A stretch of DNA of 64,000 nt. Origin: Cercozoa sp. M6MM. Its lineage: Eukaryota > Protista > Endomyxa: Ascetosporea. This document shows positions 18,357-25,977 of the stretch, in pieces. Every line of letters starts with the position of its first letter. Positions within the stretch are counted from its first letter, which is position 1. The DNA lies in assembly GCA_040357565.1 (NCBI GenBank), contig JBDODJ010000042.1; one strand, 5' to 3'. The notes under the pieces are model-generated. The model was not told where the DNA came from, ran no database searches, and saw only the letters and a list, made by a program, of their open reading frames with translations. The translations under genes were made by a program, and so were the position numbers.

Positions 18357-19007
18357 AAGTAGACTGGTCGGGAAGGATGAGAGGCCCGGTAGTCAGAAGA
18401 AGGAAGGAAGGAGAAGGAGGGACGTAAAGGAGAAAAAGAAAGGCTCTCTGTGCTGGGAAGACAGCAACAGGGATTACGTGAGAGTGCAAGGACTGGAGCC
18501 TGGAGAGGTGCTTTACCTGGTGAGTAGAGAGCCTTTTCAGGAAAGGAGCAAAATCTTGCTCTTTCGAGGTCAGTCTACCAAACACAGGGTAAGGAGGTTA
18601 GCAACACTCTCGGAGAGGTCAGGATACCAGACAAACACAATACACCACTTCTCAAAGTGCTCAATGAATAGCTTTCTTCCACGCGGAGCACCAGAGATCT
18701 GACTGGCCGGATGGAAAATGCCGTTTCGTAACATATATACTATACATTCGATTATCGGTACAGGACTCGAGTTGTAATAAATCAAAACGAAACAAATAAA
18801 AAGGACGAGGGGCGGCGAAAGCGCGTTCGGACGGGCGGAGCGCACAGTAAAGGACGAGAGGTGTGTGTTGGTTGTGTCGGGTTGGGTCGGGTCGGGTCGG
18901 TTGGGAACAGTGAGGATGTACTGTGTCACACCCGTGCGTGTGCGTATGCGGCTATAGTACACATGTCACTGTGGTCGAGGGTTCTTGAGAAAAGGGTCCG
19001 AGCCAGT

Positions 19008-21068
19008 CTAGTTGCTCGGCTGCTCGAACTTGGTTGAAATCAGTGCCTATAATCGCAAAGCATGAGAGCGGCATATTTTAGATAGAAAAGGGGGCAGTCT
19101 GCTCTACCTGGCAGTAGCGACTCTGACGGAAGCCTTCGAGAAGGTTGTCGCGCACATGCATGCGCACGGCATGGGCCACGTCATCAAACACCTCATCAGC
19201 GATCTCGTCCAGCGTGACCGACACACGCAGTGCCGCCAGCAACGGCTCTTCCAGCTACAAACCAAACACATCCATTTGACTGAAACATGCACACAGCAAG
19301 CAAAAGGTACCACAGTGATGCGATCGGCAGCTTGGTCGGCAAAGAACGTGTTGAACACCTCACCGGCAAGTGTTTGACGGTCCGACTTCTTCCTGTGCAT
19401 GACACGCACACGTCACGATTTTGTTTTGTTTTTCGTTTTCTGATCAAATAAATGATTAAACACGCCCCAAGTCAGCTTACATGGTAGAGCAAGCCTTCTG
19501 CCACTTCGTGACCTGGTCCAGGAAGAGAGTGAAGTTGCGCTTGCCCTCACTGTACACAAAACATACACTCAGATTCACACATTTTGTTGTTTCCGACGAA
19601 ACAAGCAAAAGCACCGAGCCAGGTGCAGCTCGAGGTAGCTCATGCAATCCGCATCAGCCAGGAACTGCGTAAACTTGCGCGGCTGCAGCAGCGGGTATTC
19701 TGTCAGATACCACAAGTTATCACGAATTCTGGAGAGGAGGCAAGGCAGGTCAGGGTACTCTCGGGATTGTAGAACGTCAAGTTGGTGCGCTCTGGCTGAT
19801 CACCGATCTCTTCGATCATGATCGCCGTGCACATGTTGAGCATCTCGATGAACGCGTAACGCACAGAGTGCGTAAAGTCAGCGCCAAACACGTCCTGCAT
19901 GCCTGCAACCACGGCTTCCGTCCTTTGCAAAAACACAAAACCATACACTCTCTCGAGCAACCTAACTTGAGATCAAACGGCAGAAACGCTACATATGCGA
20001 AAAGGCGCCACGAGGCACGTTGTAGCTGATGTGGCGCCTACACATGCACGCGTTTGACACATTAGCGGCCTCTAACTGTTCAAGTCAGAGAAATGTACTG
20101 GCCCAGCTCGCGCACCTTGCGATCGAGCGTCTTGAGATCACTCATGCCCTGCCACGTCACATGCACGCCGAGTGAGTGTGCACATTTAGTGTGTTATACA
20201 ATACAAGCCTACCTGAATCAGCGAGGACAGCATGTGCATCAGCGTGGCGGCATGCCGCTTCAGCGGCAGCTTGTTGAACACGCGGCGGTACTCGGGGTGC
20301 TCCACAAAGAAGCGCAGGTAGATCACCTCGCCAACCTTCTGGCGCTGGGGTTCCACTGTGTGCGCACACCGATAATACACCAGACGCAGTAACTTTGGGT
20401 CCACAAGAGTCAAGTTACCAAAGTCCCACCAGAACGTCTCAATGGTGTCAGTCACACTGCATCGCGTGCGACCCGACTCGTCCGAGACCTGATTGATTTT
20501 CACGCACATACTGTCACAGCACAAGAAGCGGAAAAATAGGGAGGCGGTACAGTCTGCCCCTGGAGCGACATGAGCGAAGCGGCCGAGCGCTTGGTTTTGG
20601 AGTTCTTTTGGCCCATTCTTAGCTCTGACAACAGCAAATGAGAACAAAAAACACAAAAGGCATTCGACACGGCTCTTTTTTTGTTTGATACTTTCCGCAT
20701 ACCTCGGCAAGGGCGTCAATAATACGACACGAGCTCTGGAGCTTCTGCGGCATACATAAACAGTAATACTTGTAACAGACAGATGATGTCCGTTCATTGA
20801 CTGTTGATCAAGCGACCCACGATGCACAACAGACAACATCAAAAAAAAAAACAAACACAAAAAACAAGCCGGCGAACGCAAAACACAGCAACACTCACAC
20901 GCACGGCTAAAGCAGCCCAGAGAACGTACCGTAGGCCAGAGTCTGTGGGAAAAAAGAAAGCAAACGTTGTTGTGGCTGGGCAAGGGGACCCGTTCCGGTG
21001 GGCTGACTACCCATCCGTTTCAATTGGTAGCCACTGCCCACTGGCATCGAGTGCGTTGTAGAACACAT
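19008..21068 (-). CDS. Globin plus RGS-homology domain fusion protein (start approximate)
   Basis: Globin (~19815-20400): VGEVIYLRFFVEHPEYRRVF..LKRHAATLMHML..VRELGQRHISYNVPRGAFSHMTEAVVAGMQDVFGADFTHSVRYAF. RGS-like (~19107-19700): FTQFLADADCMSYLELHL..FTLFLDQVTKWQK..LAGEVFNTFFADQAADRIT..VFDDVAHAVRMHVRDNLLEGFRQSRY. Confidence 0.85.
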
Positions 21069-21576
21069 TGTTATCTCGTATGACGCGTGCCAGCGGCAGG
21101 TATCGGGCGGACCATGCGCTAAAACCTGTTAAAACTGGCTGGTCGAGTTGGTTGGCTTGATCGATCGCTCGCTAGTGCTGTGGATTTTGTTTCATTCTTT
21201 GCTATGCCGTCGGGTGGTCTGCGGGCACAGGCGAGATCGCAAACCGTCCTGACTGGGACTCCGGGACTGGTGCACAATCACACTCATGGTATAAGAATGC
21301 ACTACTGAGCTGAGCCATGCACCGCCATGCGTTTTACGCAACGGTGGTACTCTTGCGTCACTAGGACCTGTTTGCTTAGACATCGAGATACACGTGCAAC
21401 TGAACGAGCAGCTGGGGCACCAGTCAGAGCGACTGTCAGATTATTTGTCCGACGAAAACGACTCAAGTATCCCCACCCCACCTTGTGTTGTACTGTATTG
21501 ACAGAGACGGGCATTGCATCAGTGCCTGGTAACTTAGAAAGGGCGACACGCCAGAGGCCAGCACGCTCGCACTTCT

Positions 21577-23217: not shown

Positions 23218-25977
<2,760 letters not shown>

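Follow-up and report, generated by a model that had tools for sequence, protein, structure and literature searches.

Is a haem-binding globin wired, on one polypeptide, to a regulator of heterotrimeric G-protein signalling? This question is raised by a locus on contig JBDODJ010000042.1 (assembly GCA_040357565.1; contig C42 in the following), of which a stretch of 64,000 nucleotides was analysed, referred to here as the window. The host, deposited as Cercozoa sp. M6MM, is the amphizoic marine amoeba Lemnamoeba sinaloensis strain M6MM (Apofilosa, Rhizaria), which comes from triggerfish gills. A preliminary description of the locus had proposed that its exons splice in frame into a complete globin, a linker of about 20 residues and a complete RGS fold. 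As judged from sequence, our analysis confirms this globin-RGS fusion as one real gene, located on the minus strand at window positions 20616-19008 (ATG to stop) with 11 exons and a product of 319 amino acids (aa). The same architecture recurs in a close copy on contig C942 and in two more distant genes on contigs C4 and C23 of the same draft genome (23.6 Mb).

The exon model was built from a three-frame translation and is identical, letter for letter, to the deposited protein P0001 ('hypothetical protein MHM6MM_002187', Cercozoa sp. M6MM), which was retrieved by searching with the stop-free open reading frame 20189-20983 that happens to include exons 2 and 3. All introns are of the GT-AG type and 56-88 nucleotides (nt) long. 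The gene and its upstream region are made up of the following features:

20617..20999, minus strand: upstream non-coding stretch in common with the C942 paralog (blastn homology, non-triplet indels, conserved splice-like sites)
20551..20616, minus strand: exon 1, residues 1-22, start codon 20616-20614, with Gly2 and Ser6 and then Lys4, Lys7, Lys9 and Arg10 at the N-terminus (own model and P0001)
20419..20488, minus strand: exon 2, residues 23-46 (first base of codon 46), short hairpin and start of globin helix A, Trp42
20213..20355, minus strand: exon 3, globin helices B, C and E, with Tyr58 (B10, 20320-20318), Phe72 (CD1, 20278-20276), His80 (E7, 20254-20252) and Leu84 (E11)
20099..20148, minus strand: exon 4, end of helix E, EF turn and start of helix F, codon of Gln110 split by intron 4
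19993..20037, minus strand: exon 5, helix F with the proximal His112 (F8, 20033-20031)
19759..19922, minus strand: exon 6, globin helices G and H and first part of the linker, residues 126-179 and first base of codon 180
19615..19699, minus strand: exon 7, end of the linker and RGS helices 1-2, Met199 as first ATG
19481..19549, minus strand: exon 8, RGS helices 3-4, Asn213 and Phe214 at the canonical Glu-Asn sites
19311..19392, minus strand: exon 9, RGS helix 5 and 5-6 loop, Thr257 (19316-19314) at the RGS4 Asn128 site (Ser in the C942 paralog)
19108..19254, minus strand: exon 10, RGS helices 6-8, Asn295, Leu296 and Gly299 at the RGS4 Asp163, Ser164 and Arg167 sites
19008..19046, minus strand: exon 11, end of the last RGS helix, C-terminus and stop codon; the C-terminal helix can be aligned to its counterpart in the C4 paralog

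Pfam analysis, which the preliminary description had named as a check, recovered both domains on P0001 above the curated cut-offs: Globin (PF00042) on residues 57-154 (E-value 1e-11, 45.8 bits versus a cut-off of 22) and RGS (PF00615) on residues 189-306 (E-value 1.1e-8, 35.9 bits versus a cut-off of 23.9), the latter spanning positions 2-114 of the 117 in the model. The last globin helix ends around residue 164 and the first RGS helix starts at 186, in agreement with the proposed linker of about 20 residues. Analyzed exon by exon, the same profiles gave an E-value of 0.12 for Globin on exon 3 and no match on the RGS exons, which indicates that the domains are visible only in the spliced product. 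Likewise, six-frame genome searches with PF00615 and PF00042 had no match at the globin-RGS locus, a consequence of the short exons and not of the absence of the domains.

Globin and RGS halves meet at a single in-phase GT-AG intron of 59 nt (intron 6), and deposited intron-retaining isoforms of both close copies cross this junction: read-through of the exon 8 donor leads to the 231-aa isoform P0003, and P0005, an isoform of the C942 copy, retains intron 3. The deposited annotation was produced with funannotate (train, predict and update) using transcript reads, and extra isoforms in funannotate derive from assembled transcripts. Taken together, the isoforms and the transcript-based pipeline suggest transcript support for the fusion.

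Structure prediction, also proposed in the preliminary description, supported the same domain arrangement. The AlphaFold model of P0001, calculated from a 14-row alignment of the four family members and RGS domains of the same genome, had a mean predicted local distance difference test score (pLDDT) of 85.5, with both halves near 90 and a low-confidence linker at residues 168-174. A model predicted from the single sequence (pLDDT 41.9) was discarded in favour of the alignment-based one. Foldseek matched the globin half to Hell's Gate globin I (HGbI; 3s1i) with a template modelling (TM) score of 0.89 and a root-mean-square deviation (rmsd) of 1.4 Å and to neuroglobins with TM scores of 0.75-0.85, and the RGS half to RGS4 in 1agr (1agr_E; TM 0.88) and to RGS8 (2ode; TM 0.85, rmsd 1.5 Å), all scores being target-normalised. 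The C-terminal half is accordingly modelled as a nine-helix RGS fold.

The closest sequence matches of the globin half among solved structures are Hell's Gate globin I (3s1i, E-value 6e-12), the HGbRL globin (3wfw, 2.4e-7) and neuroglobins. In the alignment with HGbI (residue numbering according to PMC4476040), Tyr58 falls on Tyr29(B10), His80 on Gln50(E7) and His112 on the proximal histidine. The four haem-pocket residues listed in the preliminary description, B10 Tyr, CD1 Phe, E7 His and F8 His, are all present (Tyr58, Phe72, His80 and His112), together with Leu84 at E11. The proximal-histidine motif is indeed interrupted, as had been claimed: intron 4 cuts the codon of Gln110, with His112 following as the second complete codon of exon 5. 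Pfam detected no Protoglobin match in P0001. From alignment and model, the globin half is a complete 3-on-3 globin of the bacterial flavohaemoglobin-like type without a D helix, and it is predicted to bind haem.

To evaluate the constraint on this gene, we compared it with the copy on contig C942 (P0004, MHM6MM_007496; L005:2092-3682, plus strand), which encodes a protein with 93 % identity. All 11 exons have the same length in both copies, the splice sites are intact and there are zero indels in exons. Exon identity is 82-98 % (91-98 % for exons 1-10) and intron identity 51-92 %, and all indels reside in the introns. Homology in blastn covers 18786-20999 and a 72-base piece at 21324-21395. 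Since the flanks beyond 18786-20999 are unrelated, the C942 copy is a dispersed duplicate; a haplotig was considered and rejected in view of the limited homology and unrelated flanks. In the source paper, the k-mer profile is haploid for the majority of the genomes, and the only two species given as diploid are different ones (PMC11069148). The ratio of non-synonymous to synonymous substitution rates (dN/dS) between the two copies is 0.22 overall, 0.22 for the globin and 0.30 for linker and RGS domain. Non-synonymous changes account for 23 of 51, compared with 77 % expected (p 5e-7). On this comparison, both halves of the fusion are under purifying selection.

Two further globin-RGS genes, both with the two domains above the Pfam cut-offs, are located elsewhere in the genome:

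Contig C4, L016:2601-4779, plus strand: gene of P0006 (471 aa), Pfam Globin and RGS
Contig C23, L015:3500-1349, minus strand: gene of P0007 (386 aa), Pfam Globin and RGS

Both proteins are about 30 % identical to P0001 and contain a Ser/Arg-rich linker of about 100 residues with Arg-Arg-x-Ser sites. The Pfam Globin scores of the paralogs are 42-45 bits, and the RGS score of P0004 is 47.2 bits. Tyr58, Phe72, His112, Trp42 and Pro66 are invariant in all four proteins, whereas residue E7 distinguishes the two pairs, with His in C42/C942 and Gln in C4/C23. Conservation between the two subfamilies is strongest in RGS helices 1-3, which may face the globin. Among the RGS domains sampled from the genome, those of P0006 and P0007 gave the best scores with the RGS half of P0001, which in sequence terms is consistent with a single origin of the fusion but is not a proof of it. 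A Met-Gly...Ser motif lies just inside the annotated N-termini of P0006 and P0007 and may mark their true start. In the deposited P0007 model, translation seems to run into an intron, so that the final RGS exons are missing, although the DNA contains them (L015:1729-1782 and 1349-1477).

Two additional globin genes, on contigs C385 (L018:4198-2597, minus strand) and C2 (L017:4182-3080, minus strand), share the E-helix motif of the family. No RGS exons were detected within the 6 kb examined at these loci. Upstream of both globins, on the same strand, are exons resembling a CheY-type receiver, for which the sole Pfam support is a Response_reg match with an E-value of 0.016 in one exon.

Comparison of the close copies also defined the start of the gene. 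The preliminary description had placed the 5' limit at an ATG at 21068, which our data do not support; translation starts at the ATG 20616-20614. Homology with the C942 copy begins only at 20999, and the shared stretch 20999-20617 contains non-triplet indels, so the upstream ATG was rejected. Nor did the splice sites conserved between both copies place this stretch in frame. The region is about 85 % identical between C42 and C942 and contains two conserved GT...AG pairs, which suggests introns in the 5' untranslated region (UTR) and a shared promoter; it probably represents the promoter and a 5' UTR with two UTR introns.

With this start codon, P0001 begins with a putative lipid anchor, which is an addition to the preliminary description, where it had been missed. 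The consensus for N-myristoylation requires Met-Gly at the start, a small residue at position 6 and the absence of forbidden residues from position 3. Gly2, Gln3, Ser6 and Lys7 of P0001 fit this motif, and four basic residues are found within the first ten; Gly2 and Ser6 together with basic residues are the pattern of myristoyl-plus-basic membrane anchors. Codons 1-35 differ between C42 and C942 by 6 synonymous and 0 non-synonymous changes. Exons for the C-terminal domain of an N-myristoyltransferase are present on contigs C705 and C644. We predict that P0001 is attached to the membrane by an N-terminal myristoyl group and a basic patch.

What the RGS half may do depends on its surface for G-alpha. 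For the register, the globin-RGS family was aligned with nine canonical RGS domains from this genome and the profile was matched to solved R4-type RGS proteins. As G-alpha contact residues in the RGS4-Gi-alpha-1 structure we take RGS4 Glu87, Asn88, Asn128, Asp163, Ser164 and Arg167, which compare as follows:

RGS4 Glu87-Asn88: Glu-Asn in the canonical domains of the genome, Asn213-Phe214 in P0001
RGS4 Asn128: Asn in the canonical domains of the genome, Thr257 in P0001 (Ser in P0004)
RGS4 Asp163-Ser164: Asp-Ser in the canonical domains of the genome, Asn295-Leu296 in P0001
RGS4 Arg167: no entry for the canonical domains of the genome, Gly299 in P0001

With these replacements, classical GTPase-activating protein (GAP) activity of P0001 appears doubtful. 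The C4 paralog P0006 shows Glu-Asn, Asn and Asp-Leu and keeps the canonical residues except for Leu at the position of Ser164, and six-frame translation of the matching C23 exons revealed the same contact residues. For P0001, the best single-sequence match among solved RGS folds was sorting nexin 13 with an E-value of only 0.2. In the Protein Atlas, the whole protein had no usable match; RGS-named clusters scored 0.82-0.84 against residues 181-319, which serves as a lead only.

Possible targets are numerous in this organism. A profile search of the genome found G-alpha exons above the Pfam cut-off at at least 16 loci and RGS exons at more than a dozen. These numbers indicate that heterotrimeric G-protein signalling is rich in Lemnamoeba, and the diverged RGS surface could fit some G-alpha paralog. 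A G-alpha family of this size is unusually large for a 24-Mb genome.

The best explanation for the combined features is a membrane-anchored haem sensor with an RGS output onto G-alpha, a reading that is plausible but unproven and to which we assign a probability of roughly 50 %. P0001 would most likely reside on the inner side of the membrane, next to G-alpha subunits that are themselves lipid-anchored. The state of the haem, in terms of ligand or redox (O2, nitric oxide (NO), CO, ferric versus ferrous), would be passed via the short linker to the RGS-homology domain and alter its engagement of G-alpha. As the contact residues are replaced in the C42/C942 pair, state-dependent binding or sequestration of particular G-alpha subunits, or of another partner, would be expected for P0001 and its close paralog, rather than efficient GAP catalysis. 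For a haem-regulated GAP, the better candidates would be the C4 paralog and likewise the matching C23 exons, which keep the canonical contact residues.

Several points weigh against this sensor model. All six RGS4-type contact positions are replaced in P0001, which weakens the idea of a gas-gated GAP for this protein. The predicted TM score (pTM) of 0.54 makes the relative placement of the globin and RGS domains in the AlphaFold model uncertain, and canonical RGS domains were part of the folding alignment and guided the RGS half towards that fold. Furthermore, the evidence for a single transcript consists of genome sequence, paralogs and deposited annotation, and no orthologue was found outside the Lemnamoeba genome, so that conservation across species cannot be used as support.

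Among the alternatives, the one that survives best assigns the globin an enzymatic or protective role as NO dioxygenase, nitrite reductase or scavenger of reactive oxygen species, with the RGS half and the lipid anchor merely positioning it at membrane G-protein complexes. Such a role would be in agreement with the nearest solved relatives, which are of the flavohaemoglobin type and carry Tyr B10, as is typical of pockets that bind O2 very tightly and dioxygenate NO (PMC4476040), and with the protection against reactive oxygen species that is discussed for membrane-anchored globin X (PMC7475203). The loss of the canonical GAP residues in P0001 points in the same direction. In contrast, P0001 has no reductase domain or partner, the RGS fusion has been kept in two subfamilies with only about 30 % identity, and purifying selection on the RGS half (dN/dS 0.30) seems stronger than a simple tether would need. 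We consider a membrane-tethered enzyme rather unlikely.

Alternatively, the globin may sense haem state while the RGS-homology domain of P0001 no longer acts on G-alpha and serves as a scaffold, similar to axin, sorting nexins and AKAP10. Serine at the position equivalent to Asn128, as found in the C942 paralog, is also seen in a number of active RGS proteins, the canonical contact residues persist in the sister subfamily, and some of the at least 16 G-alpha loci could encode proteins that fit the altered surface. These findings make a pure scaffold unlikely, in spite of the change at all six RGS4-matching contact positions and of sorting nexin 13 as the best, if weak, solved match. Finally, an annotation artefact that wrongly joined neighbouring globin and RGS genes is very unlikely: the exon-level Pfam signals are weak, but the 59-nt in-phase intron leaves no space for a terminator and a promoter, Met199 is the first ATG of the RGS half, the same domain order is found in four genes on four contigs, and the P0003 and P0005 isoforms both span the junction.

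Returning to the haem sensor with an output onto G-alpha, we extend it to the whole family only tentatively, as a possibility that falls short of an even chance: the four proteins would be lineage-specific lipid-anchored haem gas or redox sensors acting directly on G-alpha, with C4/C23 as haem-gated GAPs and C42/C942 as haem-gated binders. The architecture itself is real and uncharacterised. It can be described as a globin-coupled sensor with a new output or, equally, as an RGS protein with a new input. In the literature we found no characterised globin-RGS protein, in line with the preliminary description, whose author knew of none, and a broad globin review from 2020 does not mention RGS. 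The architecture recurs in four genes of the Lemnamoeba genome. Searches with full-length P0001, with exon 10 against 1.84 billion representatives, with the family profile and in JGI metagenome contigs yielded no relatives outside the Lemnamoeba genome; word-based searches are insensitive for globins, and uniqueness is not implied. The sole other match of exon 10, P0002, was a false positive, a bacterial cadherin-repeat protein of 3047 aa for which many weak repeats were summed. Eukaryotic chimeric globins are few, and to our knowledge none feeds heterotrimeric G-protein signalling. Regulation of RGS proteins by lipids, by phosphorylation and by partner domains is known; we know of no such role for a haem domain on the same chain.

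Prokaryotic globin-coupled sensors are well studied and feed chemotaxis, c-di-GMP and kinase pathways. Bacterial and archaeal members (HemAT, diguanylate-cyclase and kinase types) resemble P0001 in having an N-terminal globin followed by a C-terminal signalling domain (PMC7475203). In these proteins, haem ligand or redox state sets the output (PMC7475203), and by analogy the same logic would be expected for P0001. However, they use sensor-family (protoglobin-like) globins and methyl-accepting chemotaxis protein, GGDEF, kinase or cyclase outputs, whereas P0001 combines a flavohaemoglobin-like globin with a eukaryotic RGS fold and a predicted lipid anchor.

Another parallel is HGbRL from Methylacidiphilum infernorum (PDB 3wfw), in which a globin close to that of P0001 (E-value 2.4e-7) is fused to a Roadblock/LC7 domain, a family that includes the GTPase-activating protein MglB (PMC4476040). 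Like P0001, HGbRL joins a globin to a GTPase-regulator-type module. Unlike P0001, it is bacterial, its Roadblock fold is unrelated to RGS and it would act on a small Ras-like GTPase. Hell's Gate globin I and neuroglobin share with the P0001 globin Tyr B10, the missing D helix and a tendency to hexacoordination (predicted for P0001), but are single-domain proteins; the E7 residue is Gln in HGbI and in C4/C23 and His in P0001. We would accordingly expect bis-His hexacoordination in P0001 and O2 stabilised by Tyr/Gln in the C4 paralog.

Neuroglobin is the only documented link between a globin and G proteins that we found in the literature. In its ferric form it binds GDP-bound G-alpha-i/o as a dissociation inhibitor, and thus resembles what is proposed for P0001 in that an oxidised globin binds heterotrimeric G-alpha at the membrane (PMC4842972). 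Neuroglobin does so via the globin surface without an RGS domain, in contrast to the separate fused RGS fold of P0001. The globin-RGS family lends some weight to this debated link. With regard to membrane attachment, animal globin X is anchored by N-terminal myristoylation (PMC7475203), similar to the anchor predicted for P0001; it has no signalling domain and carries a palmitoyl-cysteine, in contrast to the basic patch after the glycine in P0001. The nine-helix fold of the RGS half is common to R4-type RGS proteins (RGS4, RGS8 and RGS16) and to non-canonical RGS-homology domains (SNX13, GRK2 and axin). P0001 lacks the RGS4-type contact residues, like the non-canonical group, whereas the C4 paralog and the C23 exons resemble the R4 type at these positions.

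If the sensor model is true, oxygen, NO or redox state would have a receptor-independent (or downstream-of-receptor) input into a G-protein pathway, in a simple and testable case. The family offers a natural comparison of canonical and altered G-alpha contact surfaces. Steep oxygen variation would be expected at fish gills, from which the amphizoic Lemnamoeba amoebae were isolated (PMC11069148). L. sinaloensis is in culture, and a chromosome-level assembly is available (PMC13746701); the same paper names RNA-seq data of the strain (SRX22918777).

Apart from the globin-RGS gene, the window contains long AC/GT dinucleotide repeats at 23560-24330, which flank a run of N that marks a scaffold gap. 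This fits the report that simple-sequence repeats broke the short-read assembly of the M6MM strain (PMC13746701).

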